From Adineta vaga (Eukaryota > Animalia > Rotifera), in assembly GCA_021613535.1 (NCBI GenBank), contig CP075493.1, forward strand, positions 6,820,001-6,884,000: a stretch of 64,000 nucleotides of DNA, read 5' to 3'. Shown here piece after piece: positions 3,380-18,904 of this stretch. The first letter of the stretch is position 1. Every line of letters begins with the position of its first letter. The notes beneath the pieces were generated by a model. That model had not been told where the DNA came from. It saw nothing but the letters and a program-made list of their open reading frames with translations, and did no database searches. The translations under genes were made by a program, and so were the position numbers.

Positions 3380-5698
3380 TCACGGTAATATCGGTGAATA
3401 CCAAAGATGTGGAGCACCGCCATACGCTGACATATTTTTCATATGATCTATACAGAAAGAAAAACATTTTGATTAAATTAATTTCTATATTATTGTTCTT
3501 CTACCTGGAGATAGATTTGGTTGAATAGCTGAGGGATAAGTTGAACAAGAACGATTATAGGGTGTGCTAAAAGGACTAAGTCCATCGTAACCACGTGTTG
3601 AAGCTAGAAAAAGAAAAAGAAATGATGGAAATTCCTTGAGGATATAAATAGCAATTAAGTCTTACTGGGTAAAAATGTTGGGTAACCACTTGAACTGCAT
3701 GCCACAGCAGCAGAAAAACCTGAACTAAATGTTCCATATTGATGATGATGATGATGATGGTGTGGATCATTTGGTATCGACGGATTATTCGATGGAAATA
3801 CTTGAGGATACAATGAAGTAGAAGACGATGATGGAATTTGTGGTGGAGTTGTACCTAAAGGTCGCATATTTTCACCCATATCATTCATTGCTTGTTGTGG
3901 ATGTTGTCGTCGACCTTTGACTTTATCTTCTCGTCGATATTTTGCTCGACGATTAGAAAACCATACCTAGATTTTCAAATAAATGATAATATATTCGATA
4001 TTGTTCAAAATCGAAATTATTTTACTTGTATTCGAGCTTCTGGTAAACTAATTTTAAGTGCAAGTTTTTCTCGTGCATATACATCTGGATAATGTGTACC
4101 ATTAAAAGCTAAATATGAATATATTTCATGATTAATTATATAAGAGACAAAACTACTCAAGATACCTTGTTCTAATGCATCAATTTGTTCTTGTGTAAAT
4201 GATGTTCGATTTCGTTGTAATTTTCTTTTTAATTTTAAACGTTCTTGTACAGCTTCTTCATTTTCATTTAAATCATCTCTCATACCAATTTTGCTATCAT
4301 TACTTTCATCAGATAAATCTACGAACAAAAAAAAAGAAAAGATATGTCTTTGATCGTCAAGGTGTGATGATGAACCTTATGGTCATAATCGAACGGAAGA
4401 CGTAAAAAGGCTAATATTCAATAAGATGCCGAAATGATGATAGATAAAATGATTTTTCATTTGACAACAATGAAGAAGAAAAGAGATTTCTTATTGTAGA
4501 GATAAGCGAAACATCTAATTAAATAAAAACATCATTTCCGTCTGTCCTACTGTGTATGTATTTGTCTTAATTAGTATATAGATAAAATACATTGATGTCA
4601 AAAAAAGTTGATCTGTAGAAAAAAAACATTCCTGCTGTTAGTGTTGTTGTTGTTCTTATTTTCATTTTCTTTTTCCGTACTACTTTAATCAGAACGAAGA
4701 AAAACGAACAGCTCCGCCTTGATGACCGTCTGATCATTTATTTTATTTATCAATCATTAAGAAAAGAAACAAAAGACTTAATGATCTTTTCTTCCGATAT
4801 AACTTAAGGGCATCAGCAGTTATTTCTAATTGTATTCAAACGAACCGATCAATATCATCAGGTGGTCAAACTTCTTCTCTCTACATCTGTGACTTCATCG
4901 TATTAAATCAAAGTTGAGTTAATATACCTGCTAAGTCTTGATGAGGAACATGATTAACATCGATTGTTTGATGTTTATATTCAGAATTTGAATCACCACT
5001 ATTCGAATAGACACTTGATGTAGGTGGATGACCATAAAATGATGATGATGATGGCCAAGGCTGACCATGTAAAACACGTAATTTATTATCAACTGAATAA
5101 TAAGTTTCATGATTAGTCATTGTATCTAATGACTTGGAACCAAGATTTCGAAGAACACGATTGATTGATGAAACCTAAAATTAATATTAAGAAATGATAT
5201 TGTCTTTGTTTTCTCTTGAAAAAAAATGACAATATAAAACTTACACTTGGAATATTTTCGGTATTGCAGACATTATCTACAAGGAGACGATCACGAATTT
5301 CCCACGCGAATATCGATGGTGTTTCGCGTTTATATTGAGCAATTCGTGTAACTACATCAGATGTAGCAACACGTGGCTTAGACCCTCCAATAGCACGTGG
5401 TTTAATTGAACCAGTTTCATAGTATCGTGCTAAGATTTTAGAAACACATCCATTCGATACTTGTAAAAATCGACTAATATCACAAGGGCGCATTCCATTG
5501 TGAGCAAGTTCAACAATTCGCGTTCTAGTAGTATCAGGTAATGGGCGACCATTGACGAATAAACCTCCAAGTTGGTTAACTCCTGAATGACCTGAAAAAT
5601 ATGAATTTGTAATTTTATGCATATTAATTCTGCAGACTTGCGGTGATCGATCACCGATTAATTTCTTATCAAAACAAAAATTTACCTTTATGCGACAT
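3380..5698 (-). CDS. Pax6: Pax6 paired-box + homeodomain transcription factor, 8 coding exons
   Basis: Spliced start MSHK|[10 protein letters not shown]; full paired domain with Q44/N47; linker [10 protein letters not shown]; homeodomain [13 protein letters not shown]...IQ|VWFSNRRAK (S50); PST-rich tail ending LWYSPILP*. Exons approx. 5698-5686, 5591-5245, 5174-4928, 4318-4166, 4108-4026, 3966-3666, 3603-3505, 3447-3380. Confidence 0.95.
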
Positions 5699-8166
5699 TG
5701 AGAGATCGTTATGAATATCCATTGATTAAGTGAACTAGAAGGAATAAAATATGAGATGATATTCAAACAAAAAAAAACCGAATGATTATACCTAGACATG
5801 ATATTAGAATTTTTCTTAGAAAAAAAATATTCTTAGAGGATTCGTTTTTTTTGAAAATATGAAAAAAGAAATAGGATTCTGTTCTTTTCTTCCTTCTCTC
5901 TCTCTTTTTTTTTGATTGAGAATATTAGTAACAACTTACAGTTCAGTGAGTTGGAACTTGTTTCGGATCACACACGCGCAGGCGGGCGGACAACGCTTGC
6001 ACGGATTCGGTTAGTTAGCCTCGTGTGAACGCTCGATTTGTGCGCTTACAACTGAAAGCATCGAGACAAAACACATAAACTAGAGAAAAATCGGGCAAGC
6101 GTATAACGACAAGAAAAAAAGAAATAGATCGGGGGAAGGATAAGAAATAGAGAGAGAGAGAGAGAGACGAGAGAAAATGGCATAAGAGAATCGACCAGCA
6201 GCAAATCCGATTGTTTGTCGGTCTTTTTTCTCTCTTTTTCTGCACTAATGAACAAATTTGTTCTCTTTTCTGACTGGCTACCTTCTTTCCCCTTCTCCAT
6301 ATTAAATGACACTCAAGCACTTTGTTGCAATCAAGTAGATGAAGAACGAAGAGAACAAATTAACTATTGGTTGACTGATTCCTTTTTCCTCGACACTCGT
6401 TTTCTGATTGGTTCGTTCGTTTTTTAGTTCATTATTATTTTACCTGAGATTTTTCTTCTTCGCTCTTTCCTCTGTCTGTTTCTTTCGATTCTTCCGTTTG
6501 AGATTGATGATGAATATCAAAATCGAGACTTTTTAACGACTATACTAGGAGGAAATCTATGCTTGATTACACACATAATAACAGACGGACATCGGACAGC
6601 AGTGACAATTCTCATTGAAACAAGGACAATCATTATCGTCTCATAATTTCTGCTTGAAAAAATCTTCCAAGATTATTAATGTGTCTTTTGCTTATTATTT
6701 TCGGACAAGAAAAACAAAATCTAACATCAGACGCCGAGAATTTTAATGCATAAAGAAAAAGAAATCCGCTTGTTATTTTTCCAATATACATTCTTTCATC
6801 AACTTAGATTTATATGTTTGTAAGCTGATGAAAAAAAAATAGTTTTAAAACAATAGACAAATCAGCAGGTGATACATAGAGAGAAGGCGATTTCATTTCC
6901 CTGGAAAATATGACGCCACAAACAAGTTTAGTTTGATGATCATAAATGAAATGATATGTAGTGATTCTATATCATCGATCAATCACAGCAGGTTGTAATA
7001 ATTATTTCCACTTGGTCTACGGATAATAATTAGCTTCATTTCCATCTGATTAACATCTCTTACATATATACAACTTGATGTTCTTTGTTCATTAACACCG
7101 ACAGACAAGTTTCGTGCTTAGATAGCAATGATCATTCTAGCGTGATGATATCCGTTTGGAAAACAATTTCCTTATGATAGAAAAGAAGAAGAAGAAGCAG
7201 AAATCGCAATTATTCGATCAGAGATAGAAAAAGAAAGAGAGAGAGAGAGACGAAATGAGGTGTTAATACAAAGTAATTTGCTCTGCTCTTGCTTGTCGCT
7301 GTCACCGTCAGTTATTCCGCTGAAATGATCAAAGTAAAATTAGCATAGCATTCCTTCAGGGTCTCGACATGTAAGCGTTATGCCTATCAATAGAATAATT
7401 GCAAAGAACTTATCATTATTAAGTGACGAAACTGAAAGAGAACAAAAAAGATAAAACATTACGGCGAAAGATTTTTAGATCTGATTGATTTTGTTAATGA
7501 AATGAAAAAAGAAAAACGTATTGAAATGTCATTCATTTTCTCGTCATCATGTGTTCAGTGAAACGGAGATGATCTGATCCGATTGATGACAATACAATTG
7601 GACGCATAATCAAAAAAAAAGAAAAAGAAAGTAAGACTAGTGGAAAACGAATTCAATTGATTATGATTCGACTAGGCAAGAAATAAGACGAGCGGAAAAA
7701 GACAATCATCGGCATTTCAATTTCTTTTTCTTCTACAATTGTCTTCAGGCTAGCGCCTTTAGCTTACCTTGTTTATTATTATTGACGAAATAGAATTTTT
7801 ATTCATTAATAAAATCAGATTATCCAGAAAAGAATATTTCTTCTTGATTGAAACATTCAATCAATTAATTTGATATTAATTTTCGTATATTGAATTACAA
7901 CGATTCAAGAATTCAATGTACCATTAAGACTTTATATGAACAATTATCGAACTACTAAATAAAACAAATTCATATTCTTTCACTCTTTTTCCTGTCTAAA
8001 TTATCTCATAGAGTGCACCTTTTACTTCGCTTGATTAACACTATTGACATCTTCTAAACATTTCATATAGAAATGCATTCTAACTATTTATTCAATCTAG
8101 ATAATATATGAGAAAATACAATGGAATAATCAAGCTGGAATAATTATATGATAAAAATATTGCATT

Positions 8167-8445
8167 TTAAAGTTTTAATTTTTCTGCATTAGCTTTGGCA
8201 TCTTTTTTTAGATTTTCAGCTGTCTGTTTCGCTTCATTGGACAATTCTTTGGCATGATGTTTTGTTTCGTCATGTAATTGTTCCAAATGTTTTGCTTCAA
8301 CTTTTTGTTCATGTTTAAGGTCAGCTGCAGCATTTTCAGCATCACAACGACGAATTGTATCTTGTTCAGCAAGATTATCAGCAATGCCTCGACGTTCTTC
8401 TTCAAGAACATGAGCATTATGATGTGAAATTGATTCTTTTGACAT
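8167..8445 (-). CDS. Small hydrophilic, group-3 LEA-like protein (92 aa)
   Basis: Intronless ORF rich in A/E/K/H with no F, W or Y; C-terminal 11-mer-like units TKHHAKELSNE/AKQTAENLKKD/AKANAEKLKL. Confidence 0.6.
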   Translation of the reverse strand: MSKESISHHNAHVLEEERRGIADNLAEQDTIRRCDAENAAADLKHEQKVEAKHLEQLHDETKHHAKELSNEAKQTAENLKKDAKANAEKLKL

Positions 8446-8567
8446 GAATTTTGGTAAAAAAAAAAACTATCTAGAAGAAGTAGTCGCTCGTTTTAATCAA
8501 CATAGAGATTTATTTCTGGATTTCTTTAATACATAATGACAAGAAGGAAAAACGAAAAAACAAATGA

Positions 8568-11731
<3,164 letters not shown>

Positions 11732-11953
11732 CGTTTGTTCTCTATCTGAATAAGATGAAAACAATTTATCATTCCATTTATTATTCTGTTGATATTTTTT
11801 TATCGAAAGCAACAAACAAGATTTTATTTTTTCGTTTTTTTTCTACTTCAATCACATTATTGTGGCTCAAGAGAATAGAATTCACGTTTGATTTTTTTCC
11901 GTATTTACAATAAGCACAAACACAGACACAAAAAAAATAAGAAGAAAAACAAT

Positions 11954-13346
11954 TCAAATTAGCAATGTAACAAATTGTGGTTGATTATGAATATCTTTTC
12001 GACACATTGGACATGAACGATTTTTTAACATCCATTCTCCAATACAGGATGAATGATATTCATGTGAACATGCCAATATACTAACTTCTTGACCACTACG
12101 ATAATTTTCCAGACAAATTGAACATTCTGAACCCGTTTCACCGTTGGATAATGTTGGAGATCGTGAAGGTGATAAACAAATAGTTACAGAAGATGATGTG
12201 TTGAATAATGTTTGAAATTTAACATCTAATTTTGGTTCTTGTTTAATAGAAATTGTCGATTTCGAAGGTTCATTAAGAATTCGTTGAATAGAATTTGCCT
12301 AAGAATGAAAATATAGAAATATTGTCTTTGTACAAAGAACATATATGAATCTATTTACATTTGGTAACGTTTGAGCCGTACATATACCATTTTGTAACAA
12401 ATTTTGTTGAATTTCCCAAACAAATATCGTAGGTTTACTTGATTTAAGTTTAAGAATTTCATTACGAATGTGAGCAGTTAAACGTGGACGTTTATTAACT
12501 TTGGACGGAATCGAACGTTTCGTTATTGGAATAGATGCTGTCGAAGGTTGCGGCAGTGGTGGCGGTGGTGGTAGCGAAAAATTCATTGGTGGTAAAAGAT
12601 TAAAATATGGCGGATACGGACTATTCGATGCCATTTGAGATACTCGCGAATTCACAGAAGTTTTATCATTGGAATTTGATATTGAATTATACGATGGATA
12701 TGAAGCTAGAATAGATATAGTTAACGATTAATTTTCAATTTTAAAATAATAATTTCATTAACATACATGATCCAGGATGATCTGGATATGATGTAGCACT
12801 GTGTGTACGTATTAAAGATGAATTATTATTCCATCCGAAAAATAGATCTGGTGATGGATGTGAATAATGAAATGGAATTGTTGACGATTGATTTGTTGTC
12901 GATGAATAAATTGATGTTGATGTTGGTAGAGTTGATTCAGCTAGACGGAAGAAAGAAAATAATATCATTTCAAAATATATATTTCTTTACTTACTATGAC
13001 GTCGATAAAAATTTGGATTTGTATTATTCAAATTAGGAATTATATCAAACGACGACGATGACGACGACGACGACGATGATGACGACAATGAATACGGCTT
13101 ATTTGTCGTTGATGTATTACCGGTTGAAAAAGAAACAGATTGTTGTGGAGAATATGTTGGATAGTTCGACTTTTCCCAAGGATACTGATGATGACGATAA
13201 TCATATGTAGTTGGATATGATCGATTACTTGCATAATTTGTATAATCTAAGAAACAATAGAGATAATATTGGATATAAAATTTTGATTTTTACTTACCGA
13301 TCGTCTGAGACATGGGTGAAACCGTATTTTCTGTGACTGTCATCAT
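11954..13346 (-). CDS. Chimeric protein: S/P/Y-rich N-terminus + paired-domain RED subdomain + C-terminal RING-H2 finger (~388 aa, 5 exons)
   Basis: Exons 13346-13298, 13246-12995, 12940-12767, 12705-12359 and 12298-11954 splice in frame (1167 nt). Contains KRPRLTAHIRNEILKLKSSKPTIFVWEIQQNLLQNGICTAQTLPN|ANSIQRILN and CSICLENY...LACSHEYHSSCIGEWMLKNRSCPMCR. Confidence 0.85.
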
Positions 13347-14425
13347 GATCTAAAATAGAAAGAAAGAAAGAAACAATAACGCCATGTTGAATCTATGTGT
13401 TCACTCATTGCAAACAAAAAGAAAAAAAGTAGGCCCACTTCGTCACGACAACTGTGTACGTATTGTGTATGTATACCTCCTTCTCTCTCTAGACGCTTGT
13501 TCGTTCTGAACGAACAAATGCGGGAGAAAGAGAGATGCTCGCCGTCTCGTCTTTCTCTTAATTATACAGTTTGTTCTTTCGTTCTGTCCTCCTTTTTTCT
13601 CCATTTCTCTCTCTCTTCCTCTTTCCTTCAATTTTTTTTTATTCACAAGGCAATGGAAAATGGAACTATGCTATCTTTTCTCATTTCTTTTTCTTTAATT
13701 ATACTCTTGTTATTTATGAAGGCGGTCGACATCCCATTGAAATCGCCCGTCGCAATATATGTATATATGTATATACATATAAATGCGCACGGACGCTCCT
13801 CGGCGTTTTTTCTCTTCTCTTTCGCTCTCGTGTCGGACTAGATAAGACAAATATATAAGATGCATGACCACTACTGTCAAGCTAGTTATAACTCGCAAAA
13901 ATGATAATTGATCACTCTCATCTGTAAGCTTCAATGGTTTACGTTCTTTCCCTGAGGTTAAAAATGTGAGCATCTGTCTATCTATCTCTCTAGCCTATTT
14001 CTTTTTACGCACGAATAATAAAAAGAAAAGAATGAAGAGAGGAAAAATGAATCTTTTGTACATTTGTCTATTACGTCTTTTTCCTCTTTTGATACACAAA
14101 AAAAACCGACTGAACAGATTGAACAGTAAATGACCTAACATTTTAGAGCGGATAGTTAATTCTCTCACAAAAGATTCTTGTCTTTGATACATACAAACAA
14201 ATGAGAAAGAGAGAAAAAAGTGTAAATAGAAAGACAAGACAAATACACACATGCACACACAGAGAAGAGAATCCATTTTTTTCTTGCTTAACATCGTAAA
14301 AATGTACATGAAGAGACATAATAGAAGATTTTACTGTTGCACACGCATACACACAAACACACAACGAAAGAAATCTACCTAAATCCATAAATGTGTGCAA
14401 TAAACTATACATATTGATATTTATA

Positions 14426-15792
14426 TCAGCAAGAAGAAGATAGAAAATTATCGCGACGACATATAGGACAGGATGAATTCATTGTAAACCAACGTGCAAT
14501 ACATTTCGAATGATATTCATGTTGACATGGAAGTACACGAATATGTTGTCCATTTTTGAAATGTGACATACAAATAACACAAGCTGTTTGTTTCGAAGAT
14601 AATGTCGAGGTTTTATAACGATAAGAAAAGAACTGTTGAACATCTACTTGATTTAAACGATTTGGATCAGATAATTTCTCCGCTAGATCTAATAATTGTT
14701 CATAATTTTCACGTTCACGATAGGAACGCCATGGTTGTGGTTGATGAATATGATGATAATGATGATGATGTAATTGTTCATCGGATGAACATGTTGATGT
14801 TGATTCACTCGATGAATCTGAATGTGCTGGAGATATATTTCCCGTTCGAATTATTGTTTGTTGTTTATTATCAAGTATAAAATTTGTTGTACGTAATGGA
14901 CTAGAACCATTCGATTGAGGTGATAATAAACGTAAATTTGTTTTCGATGATTTTGGTATTGTGCCTGAAAAAAAATAATAATAATGAAAATAAATTTTCT
15001 TGTTGATCAACAAGAATTTTGTTATTTACTTTTCTGATTCGATTTTATCAATGAATTACTATGAAAAATCGATGAATGATGATGATGATGATGTTCGGTT
15101 AGTAATGGTGAATAGTGATCGGACAAATTATGTTCATGATTGGGTGCACTATTTGTTCGATGATACGACATTGTTGTTGTGGCTAACTGTGGTAATGCTG
15201 GTAGAATATTATTGAATAGTAATGGAATTTCATTTGATGTTCGAAGATGATCCCAAGATGATGGAAGAAGATCTTGCTCCTGTTGATGTTGAAAGACCAA
15301 TGATCGACGTTTTAATGTTGCGTGCGGAGGTTGATTTTCTAATTCAATCTTATTTGAAGTTTCATATCGAGCTCGTTTATGAGTCTAAAAAACCGAATAG
15401 TTGTATGAAAAATGGAAAACGAATCATGATTCTCTTACATATTGGTCATATTCATGCAGAGAATGATGTGCTGTATAAGTGACTAAATCATCTTGTGCTG
15501 ATCGTTTTCGAGTTCCTCGTGTTGTTGTCATTGTTAGATTTCGATCATAAATAAAATCTTGACTATTTGTAGATATTGATTTTGATACAGATGATTCATT
15601 ATTTATGGAACAACGACGTCGTTTGTTTGATATAGTAGCAGATGTTATGAGATGATCGATGGAAATCGGAATAATTGGTTGATGATTTGAATTCATTTGT
15701 AATTGTTGTTGTTGTTGTTGTTCAACATAATGATCATCATGGTTTATTAAATGATATCGTCTTAGAGATGAATTCGTTTGTTTTTTATCCAT
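14426..15792 (-). CDS. RNF38/RNF44-like RING-H2 E3 ubiquitin ligase
   Basis: ENYEQLLDLAEKL motif followed by CVICMSHF...LPCQHEYHSKCIARW...SCPICRRD; low-complexity Q/H/S-rich N-terminal exons. Confidence 0.85.
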
Positions 15793-17138: not shown

Positions 17139-18904
17139 CTAATTCATCATATTTGGATGTAATTGATCGAGTTGTTGATCAAAATCATCTTCAAATTTTT
17201 TCCAATCATTTAATAAATTTTCTAATGTTTGAAACATTTTCTCAAGATTGATACTATTTGGATTATCATTTCCACCGGTTATTGTTGAATCAATTTTTTG
17301 TATTAACATTTCTAATTCACGTTCAATATTCGTCAATTTTTGCCATATCTGTTCATTTGTAGATTGTAAACGTGCACGATTCAATGCACATGAAATTAAT
17401 GTTGATGATTCACGTAATAAAGATATTAATGTTGAAAGTTTCGATTCGAATATATCTGTACAATGATCATTCGATATTGTGAGAGATGTTTTACGTTTTT
17501 TTGTTGATTTATATTCATTAAATAATTGACGTTTCACTAATGGATGTTGATCAGTTAAATAATCATGAACTAATTGTATACGTTCTTGAAATTGTAAAGA
17601 TGATGATGGGGGACTAACAGAAGTGAGTCGCGTCTTCATTTTTAATCGAATAGATGATGATTGATCGAATTCATCATTGGATTTTACCTAAAAATGTTTT
17701 CATTTATAACAAAATACAATGGAAAATATGATTATATTTACATCAGATGTAGTCAAAAGACTCATTCGAGAATTTGGATGTAATCGTGGTGAACTACGTA
17801 CAGTTGAATGAATATCTAAACCATTTGCTAATGATTTTCGATAAAATGGACTTGAAATAGGTGTTTTATAAACAGGTGATGTATGTGGTACACGATCATA
17901 TAATTTCTTTTGAAAACGTCCCATTGTTGTTCGTTCAACATAATGTGTAACTAAAGGATTTATTTCAGTTAGATTATCTAATTCATGAAAATCTTCTTCA
18001 TTCAATTGTTCCGTTATATTCGTTTGAGTTAAAATGTGATTCTGATGCTCAGTTTTATATTGTTCAAGTTTTTCTTCTAAATTTTGATTGAATTCAAGAA
18101 GATTTCGTAGAGTTAGCATATCATTTGATGATATTTTACGATAATATGTATTGATATCCGACCAAATTTTATCGATACGTGCACCAATGATCGGTGCCAT
18201 TGATACTTGTCGATCAGGTAAAATATTTGGACGATGATGTCGTGGTAAAGATTGATTCATTAATGATGGTAAAACTTTTTTCGGAACTTTTTCCGATGAA
18301 TAAACATATTCAGCTTGTTGATGTTGACGAATTTTTGAACGAAGACTATCATTATTGATGGGTTTAGTTGGATGAAGAAGATCTTTAAGAAGATCTTCAC
18401 GAACACTAGACATTGATAAAAGTGCTTCAAGTTCTTGTTGAACAAGATGAACTTCATGAGCGTATACACCTGATTGTGTATGTTTATTCGATAAGATTTG
18501 ATCGATGTTTGGAGAAATACATTCCCAATTTGGTAATGTAATTTCAATTAAATGTTCAGTAGAAAATGATTGACGACGTGAAGAAGATTTCTAGAAATAG
18601 AACAACAGTTCAAACATCAGATCATCGTTTATTTATTCATCAAAAAATTTTCACTTACACGAGATTTATGACCATTATTCTTTGTTGAAAGAATTGAATC
18701 TTGATTTATGGATAGTTTCTTTGGACTCTTTTTTAATGACGAAGATACTTTCGTATGATTTTCATGTTGTGGTGAAATATGTCGACGTTTTTTTGACTTG
18801 CTCATATAACCATTATCTTCTAGTGAACGTTTTCGTTGTTGTTTTTGATTATCATTTATATGATTTTTTTCGTGTGAATTATTGATTATAATTGAGCGTT
18901 TCAT
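17139..18904 (-). CDS. TADA3: Transcriptional adapter 3 (ADA3)-like SAGA/ATAC subunit, divergent
   Basis: Spliced segments GVYAHEVHLVQQELEALLSMSSVR and DKIWSDINTYYRKISSNDMLTLRNLL resemble the ADA3 blocks LQLELETLLS and RFWASVEPYCADIT; helical C-terminus. Start codon uncertain. Confidence 0.65.

Follow-up and report, generated by a model that had tools for sequence, protein, structure and literature searches.

The question raised by this locus is how a gene in which half of a paired domain is fused to a RING finger came to stand between a RING gene and a Pax6 gene, and whether these two neighbours are its parents. The window analysed is a 64,000-nucleotide (nt) stretch of the Adineta vaga genome (assembly GCA_021613535.1, contig CP075493.1, positions 6,820,001 to 6,884,000), and all coordinates given below are window positions. 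In order of transcription, its minus strand carries an RNF38/44-like RING-H2 gene, the gene in question (hereafter the chimera), a DDX41 orthologue, a conserved non-coding block (~7671-5836) and Pax6. A sequence-only reading of this locus had proposed local exon shuffling between Pax6 and a tandem duplicate of the adjacent RING gene. DNA-level origin of the chimera's half-domain, the RED subdomain, from a Pax6-class gene is well supported by the results presented here, and we lean slightly towards the neighbouring Pax6 and RNF38-like genes both being the actual parents.

The chimera was modelled as follows:

13346-11954, minus strand: chimera gene, five exons
13298-13346, minus strand: exon 1, with ATG at 13346; 16 codons plus 1 nt, ending in phase 1
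12995-13246, minus strand: exon 2, 252 nt, phase 1-1; Ser/Tyr/Pro-rich, disordered
12767-12940, minus strand: exon 3, 174 nt, phase 1-1; conserved FFGWNN and RTHSA motifs
12359-12705, minus strand: exon 4, 347 nt; first ~70 codons Pro-rich, with a basic KRSIPSK stretch
12496-12359, minus strand: last 46 codons of exon 4; end of the paired-domain linker and RED helices 1-2
12358-12299, minus strand: phase-0 intron (GT..AG, 60 nt); the preceding codon, ..AAT, ends at 12359
11954-12298, minus strand: exon 5; RED helix 3, linker, SPS-rich motif, RING-H2 and tail

Within exon 5, RED helix 3 lies at 12298-12269, the RING-H2 at 12127-11999 and the stop codon at 11956-11954. The encoded protein, estimated at ~330 codons in A. 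vaga by its five exons and by the length of natural orthologues (370-413 amino acids, aa), runs from a disordered Ser/Tyr/Pro-rich N-terminus through the basic stretch, the RED half only, a variable linker and the RING-H2 to an invariant C-terminal tail. Short conserved motifs stand in the disordered regions, namely RTHSA, FYRRH (which ends exon 2 and is conserved in orthologues) and the SPS-rich stretch ahead of the RING. Single window exons or natural spliced database proteins (P0005, P0016, P0176 and others) were used in searches as stand-ins. A single-sequence AF2 model of P0005 was set aside (predicted local distance difference test, pLDDT, 41).

All four introns (13297-13247, 12994-12941, 12766-12706 and 12358-12299) were found spliced out in contigs from four sequencing runs of four studies, and a single 1,110-nt contig covers all five exons. 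The runs were labelled RNA by guess only, but with every intron absent, transcripts are the sole possible source of these contigs. The chimera is a real, spliced and transcribed gene.

The RED was recognized in all 10 of 10 full-length orthologues (Pfam PAX, 29.7-39.9 bits, profile 66/72-124), each time together with a RING. A profile of 12 orthologous exons was aligned to the Pax6 exon by hhalign with 97% probability (E 1e-10), over columns 75-115 only. Neither Pfam nor hhalign gave an alignment before profile position 66-75 in any orthologue, where the PAI subdomain would lie, and no PAI-like open reading frame (ORF) was found within 1.5 kb of the chimera; no Homeodomain match was obtained in any full-length orthologue. 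By PDB sequence search, PAX6 was the best Pax match at 38.8 bits (Pax8 38.5, Pax5 35.6, Prd 32.7). Kinship of the RED with Tc1-type transposases, one of the alternatives that the sequence-only reading had named as fatal to its proposal, was not borne out: no transposase was present among the PDB sequence matches, and when a three-helix AF2 model of the RED region (pLDDT 79) was searched with Foldseek, 6PAX ranked first (root-mean-square deviation 0.6 Å over 54 columns) and Tc3 transposase appeared only at rank 49. The input alignment of that model contained Pax sequences, which biases it to the Pax fold and counts against the structural part of this evidence. Assignment of the half-domain to the Pax type, rather than the transposase type, is supported.

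The evidence that ties the RED to a Pax6-class gene in particular is an intron. The Pax6 features needed for the comparison are:

5722 to ~3500, minus strand: Pax6 gene body, with a predicted ATG at 5722
5245-5591, minus strand: Pax6 paired-box exon; 347 nt, 115 codons, start phase 1, end phase 0
5244-5175, minus strand: Pax6 phase-0 intron (GT..AG, 70 nt)

Residues 72-114 of chimera exon 4 map to Pfam PAX profile positions 72-115 (29.5 bits; cut-off 22), and residues 1-115 of the Pax6 paired-box exon map to positions 2-116 (209.6 bits), so that both exons end at the same position of the paired domain. The coordinates and phase that the sequence-only reading had given for the two introns were exact, and its claim of a common site holds: both introns follow paired-domain residue 115 and both are in phase 0. 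Independent gain of an intron at an identical site and phase has a chance of ~1/165 (55 codons x 3 phases). In the whole A. vaga assembly (6 contigs, 100.8 Mb), a split right after '..PS' is confined, as far as Pax loci are concerned, to three pairs of genes: the neighbour Pax6 and its ohnologue (C1/C4), the second Pax6-like genes (C2/C5) and the chimeras. The Pax2/5/8-like genes have their intron 17 nt downstream, within the Arg codon of VSSINR (AG|GTAAG), loci L009/L012 and L006 read through without an intron there, and the C2/C5 pair carries two additional paired-box introns, Q|VSNG and ATP|DVV. In echinoderm and hemichordate Pax6, the first 115 residues of the paired domain are likewise encoded in one 347-bp exon (PMC4488758). 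Since the chimera retains an intron specific to the Pax6 class, the RED was copied as DNA and retroposition is ruled out, as the sequence-only reading had maintained. Other Pax-type loci of A. vaga were recorded at C2:3565753, C5:13878770, C4:14557831, C1:7164412, C4:5319525, C1:6991950, C4:5898140 and C2:11085149, with a further one, C5:8294528, recognized by a weak match only (E 0.19).

At exactly 347 nt, chimera exon 4 equals the Pax6 paired-box exon in length, and both start in phase 1 and end in phase 0. Homology of the whole exons was considered and rejected, given that orthologue lengths vary and that no PAI remnant was found, and the equality is probably a coincidence: the exon measures 356 nt in the C4 copy of the chimera, ~357 nt in Rotaria socialis and ~385 nt in Rotaria sp. 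Silwood2, and is shorter in L033, L041 and L042 (orthologue range ~221-385 nt).

The RING finger leads to the other neighbour, which lies immediately upstream of the chimera:

14426-15792, minus strand: RNF38/44-like RING-H2 gene
15792-15439, 15384-15030 and 14964-14426, minus strand: its coding exons, as predicted from DNA
14584-14456, minus strand: its RING

The chimera's RING-H2 covers the full zf-RING_2 profile (54.2 bits) and is of the C3H2C3 type, with all eight ligands and the conserved Trp present. When it was used in a six-frame search of the genome, the best match after itself and its ohnologue was the neighbour RNF, at 58.2 bits and 48% identity (47.7 bits for the next match), and the reverse search from the RNF RING returned the chimera as best (60.6 vs 55.6 bits). 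Across the 100.8 Mb, the core C-x-HEYH-x-x-C was found at five places: both chimeras, both RNFs and a chance match interrupted by a stop codon (0 occurrences in a reversed control search); in open frame it is therefore limited to the chimera pair and the RNF pair. It is a rare character for the two to share, 'EY' standing at these two positions in 10/267 cores of the foreign RINGs most similar to the query. The likeness of the two RINGs that the sequence-only reading had reported thus extends to a reciprocal best match and a genome-unique core. The neighbour was typed as RNF38/44-like by PDB sequence search, human RNF38 scoring 78.8 bits over an alignment that starts 20 residues before the RING, vs 57.8 for RLIM.

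The arrangement of the genes is conserved. The RNF, the chimera and Pax6 are all on the minus strand and span ~10.5 kb, much as the sequence-only reading had it, with one further gene inside the block:

~11560-8700, minus strand: DDX41 orthologue, between the chimera and Pax6

This gene was assigned to DDX41 by PDB sequence search (51.6 bits vs 35.8 for DDX3X) and is single-copy in the assembly (one genomic match). On C4, the ohnologous block keeps the order and orientation of RNF, chimera and Pax6, with DDX41 absent; the chimera there shares all five exons and has an intron of 57 nt at the identical site. The order RNF-chimera-DDX41-Pax6 was found in the window and in R. socialis; the order RNF-chimera-Pax6 was found in A. 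vaga C4, in metagenome contigs L034, L040 and L044 (one of the three having 50% G+C) and in Rotaria (L047; Rotaria sp. Silwood2). The synteny that had been proposed as a check therefore extends over the A. vaga ohnologue, Adineta-like contigs, a GC-rich relative and Rotaria. The simplest history is that an ancestral RNF-chimera-DDX41-Pax6 block was duplicated and that one DDX41 was then lost. In the GC-rich relative (L033 5970-7390, L044 5354-5488), a gene related to the upstream neighbour and orthologous to window 17703-18590 stands at the RNF position or ahead of it. On the long-read metagenome contig L040 (8405-9167), the frame of the chimera copy is broken in the RED as well as in the RING, which means either a pseudogene or faulty assembly.

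Databases list proteins that combine PAX with a RING from A. vaga, A. ricciae, A. steineri, Rotaria sordida, R. socialis and Rotaria sp. Silwood1 and Silwood2. In the gene tree, the clade of C1-type chimeras includes both Adineta and Rotaria (support 99/98). The fusion is ancient, being older than the split of the ohnologues and than the Adineta-Rotaria split, and is thus no recent local footprint. Ratios of non-synonymous to synonymous substitution rates (dN/dS) of 0.06-0.39 for the RED and 0.03-0.15 for the RING place the chimera under purifying selection. It is highly improbable that the gene derives from a retroposed fragment of Pax mRNA or is an artefact of read-through, mis-assembly or mis-annotation: the parental intron is kept at its exact site and phase, all four introns are spliced in RNA-derived contigs, the same architecture recurs in independent assemblies of seven named taxa, both domains are under purifying selection, and no evidence in favour of either origin was found.

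A phmmer search with P0005 against 1.84 billion representatives listed matches to both domains only among close relatives of the query (59-70% identical); the other listed matches were RING-only, except for exon-level RED fragments of chimera copies and one Pax protein, P0110. P0110 (325 aa) is Pax2/5/8-like and contains two tandem copies of the segment from 'YYETGS' through the RED, by internal duplication or as a gene-model artefact. P0024, which aligns over residues 3-155, was rejected as a relative because it is a multi-RING protein without RED. No usable match was obtained by ESM Atlas feature search, and in a word search the named proteins with both domains were all from Adineta or Rotaria. 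The fusion gene is bdelloid-wide (Adineta and Rotaria), and no relative outside bdelloids was found in the searches made. A literature search yielded no report of a paired-RING gene, and public records name the chimera merely 'RING-type domain-containing protein'; an architecture of half a paired domain plus a RING has not been described previously.

Parentage by the two immediate neighbours is a more demanding claim than class membership, and a number of results weigh against it, in the RED, in the RING and in the remainder of the gene. For the RED, MAFFT alignments A1 and A2 were discarded because RED fragments were misaligned onto the RING, alignment A3 was used for the RED core, and the tree was built from the 38 codons before the intron only. 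Over these codons, the chimera is 39-45% identical to the C2/C5 Pax6-like pair vs 29-39% to the neighbour Pax6. The 38-column tree gave no resolved placement, so the separate RED phylogeny that had been proposed to establish parentage does not do so: forcing the chimera to join the neighbour Pax6 costs 6.1 log-likelihood units (lnL), with p = 0.064 in the approximately unbiased (AU) test, and AU p was 0.16 for the C2/C5 pair, 0.18 for all Pax6, 0.05 for Pax2/5/8-like genes and 0.02 for the L009/L012 type. The higher identity and milder test for C2/C5 would suit a RED taken from a Pax6-class gene of another lineage (the second Pax6-like pair or a common ancestor), to which the adjacency of Pax6 would be coincidental or secondary, as would the canonical 'CT' that the chimera shares with the C2/C5 pair where all neighbour-type Pax6 copies have 'CN'. 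However, 'CT' is the ancestral Pax6 state and hence no proof of kinship to C2/C5, the C2/C5 genes carry the RED intron ATP|DVV, which is absent from both the chimera and the neighbour Pax6, and co-oriented adjacency to Pax6 was kept in every examined block that reaches far enough. We consider this other-lineage source unlikely.

For the RING, the best tree (53 columns) has the chimeras joined with the neighbour RNFs, the pairing that had been expected, but with support of 11/0, which leaves the grouping itself unsupported. In matches to the chimera's RING, human RNF38 has no advantage in score over ZNRF3, Arkadia or RLIM, and the RNF38/44 pre-RING segment (YE-x-LL-x-LAE ... SYR), which is present in the neighbour, has no profile similarity in the chimera linker. 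These points, together with identities of 45-51% that are reached by many unrelated RINGs worldwide and the occurrence of HEYH in human RLIM and in 7/126 foreign representatives, would also fit a RING taken from a different RING-H2 gene, with HEYH arising by convergence. We regard such a source as rather unlikely, since the chimera and RNF RINGs are reciprocal best matches within the genome, the open-frame HEYH core there is limited to the two adjacent gene pairs, and the adjacency of RNF and chimera is conserved across genera.

For the remainder of the gene, the N-terminal 220 residues and the linker resemble neither RNF nor Pax6, and no result bears out the tandem RING duplicate that the sequence-only reading took as the backbone of the chimera. 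Comparison of the N-terminus with the RNF by hidden Markov model (HMM) iteration and hhalign gave nothing significant (best 1.2% probability over 12 columns); homology between them was rejected, only the short RT[HN]SA motif being common to both. Nor was any homology found between the linker or N-terminus and the part of Pax6 that lies 3' of the paired box, and this too was rejected. Upstream DNA of the chimera and Pax6 aligned with 28.3 bits, which does not exceed what shuffles give (mean 24.3, maximum 31.1), a search with the N-terminal 165 residues gave matches confined to the chimera family, and no remnant of the PAI, of the RNF pre-RING motif or of other neighbour regions was found in the chimera. 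In the GC-rich copy L033, the RNF38-like gene is missing upstream. The R-T-[N/H]-S-A motif itself lies in RNF exon 2 (15140-15170) and in chimera exon 3 (12790-12815); it looks like a basophilic-kinase or 14-3-3-type site and is too short to prove common descent.

With the two neighbours as parents, a DNA-level rearrangement in the RNF38/44-like - (DDX41) - Pax6 neighbourhood, before the bdelloid genome duplication, would have fused two pieces: a Pax6-class segment comprising the end of the paired-box exon, the phase-0 intron and the start of the following exon, and a copy of the RING from the neighbour RNF. A single tandem duplication with one break upstream of the RNF's RING and a second immediately downstream of the Pax6 paired box would yield, on one strand, RNF, a chimera of Pax6 5' and RNF 3' parts, and Pax6, with the RED before the RING, which is the order observed. 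It would require later loss of the PAI, gain of the two phase 1-1 exons and, had DDX41 been in place by then, loss of one copy of it. A two-step route, the one put forward in the sequence-only reading, in which an RNF duplicate was formed and a Pax6 piece was then inserted into it, would explain the order equally well, and the two routes are indistinguishable because nothing outside RED and RING resembles either neighbour. The RED starts in mid-exon and its helix 3 shares exon 5 with the RING. The borders of the RED are therefore not at introns and the breakpoints lie inside parental exons, which departs from exon shuffling of the classical, intron-mediated kind.

In Drosophila, chimeric genes are known at the junction of tandem duplications spanning two adjacent genes. 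The present gene likewise lies between intact, co-oriented putative parents, its 5' domain being that of the downstream gene and its 3' domain that of the upstream gene. It differs in the age of the event, at which breakpoints or flanking homology can no longer be seen, in that the N-terminal 220 residues and the two phase 1-1 exons are unexplained, and in that DDX41 lies inside the block. Homology of the whole 5' part, promoter and first exons included, to the downstream parent, as in junction chimeras, was sought without success in the N-terminal exons, at the PAI position and in the upstream DNA; given the age of the event, its absence does not exclude such an origin.

Compared with the RED of Pax6, that of the chimera has the same three-helix fold, the same preceding piece of basic linker and the same phase-0 intron after residue 115, and its conserved core residues are invariant between chimera and Pax genes (alignment A3). 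The chimera differs from Pax6 in having no PAI, homeodomain or octapeptide and in the RING finger that follows the RED; helix 3 has Gln in place of Asn, and Asn in place of the last Arg. With members of the RNF38/RNF44 family it shares a C-terminal C3H2C3 RING and the short tail after it, but it does not have the pre-RING segment carried by the neighbour. Pax forms that use the RED include Pax6(5a) and Drosophila eyegone, and E3 ligases with a DNA- or chromatin-binding module of their own include UHRF1, MSL2 and RAG1. Like these ligases, the chimera has a nucleic-acid-binding module (a putative one) and a RING in one polypeptide; the module itself is different.

Judged from its domains, the product is most likely a putative nuclear E3 ubiquitin ligase tethered to DNA by the RED helix-turn-helix, and it would ubiquitinate chromatin-bound proteins at RED-type sites. 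A more far-reaching proposal, which we consider less likely than not, is that of a bdelloid-specific, sequence-directed ubiquitin ligase whose RED was taken up by a RING through a single tandem duplication and which would act at RED-type (Pax6(5a)-like) sites, where Pax6, Pax6 cofactors or histones may be among its targets; if true, it would make the gene a lineage-specific regulator derived from a master control gene. The locus offers a natural case of a new gene assembled from two known genes, with the putative parents still flanking it, that was kept under selection in both ohnologous blocks and in two bdelloid genera. If the RED still binds DNA, the gene would be a ready-made DNA-targeted E3 ligase, and it provides a way to probe the role of the RED subdomain by itself.

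The rest of the block holds the following. Besides its paired domain, Pax6 has a split paired-type homeodomain (~4320-3900) and a tail rich in Pro, Ser and Thr. Between DDX41 and the blocks upstream of Pax6 lies an ORF of 92 codons (8167-8445, minus strand), Lys/Glu/Ala-rich and similar in composition to late embryogenesis abundant (LEA) proteins, with no Pfam match. The non-coding or 5'-untranslated blocks upstream of Pax6 (5836-5967, 6018-6359, 7175-7339 and 7536-7671) are strongly conserved, with matches in the C4 ohnologue (identity of up to 97% over 108 nt), in Adineta-like metagenome contigs and also in a relative with 50% G+C (100% over 54 nt), and are candidates for regulatory elements or leader exons of Pax6.

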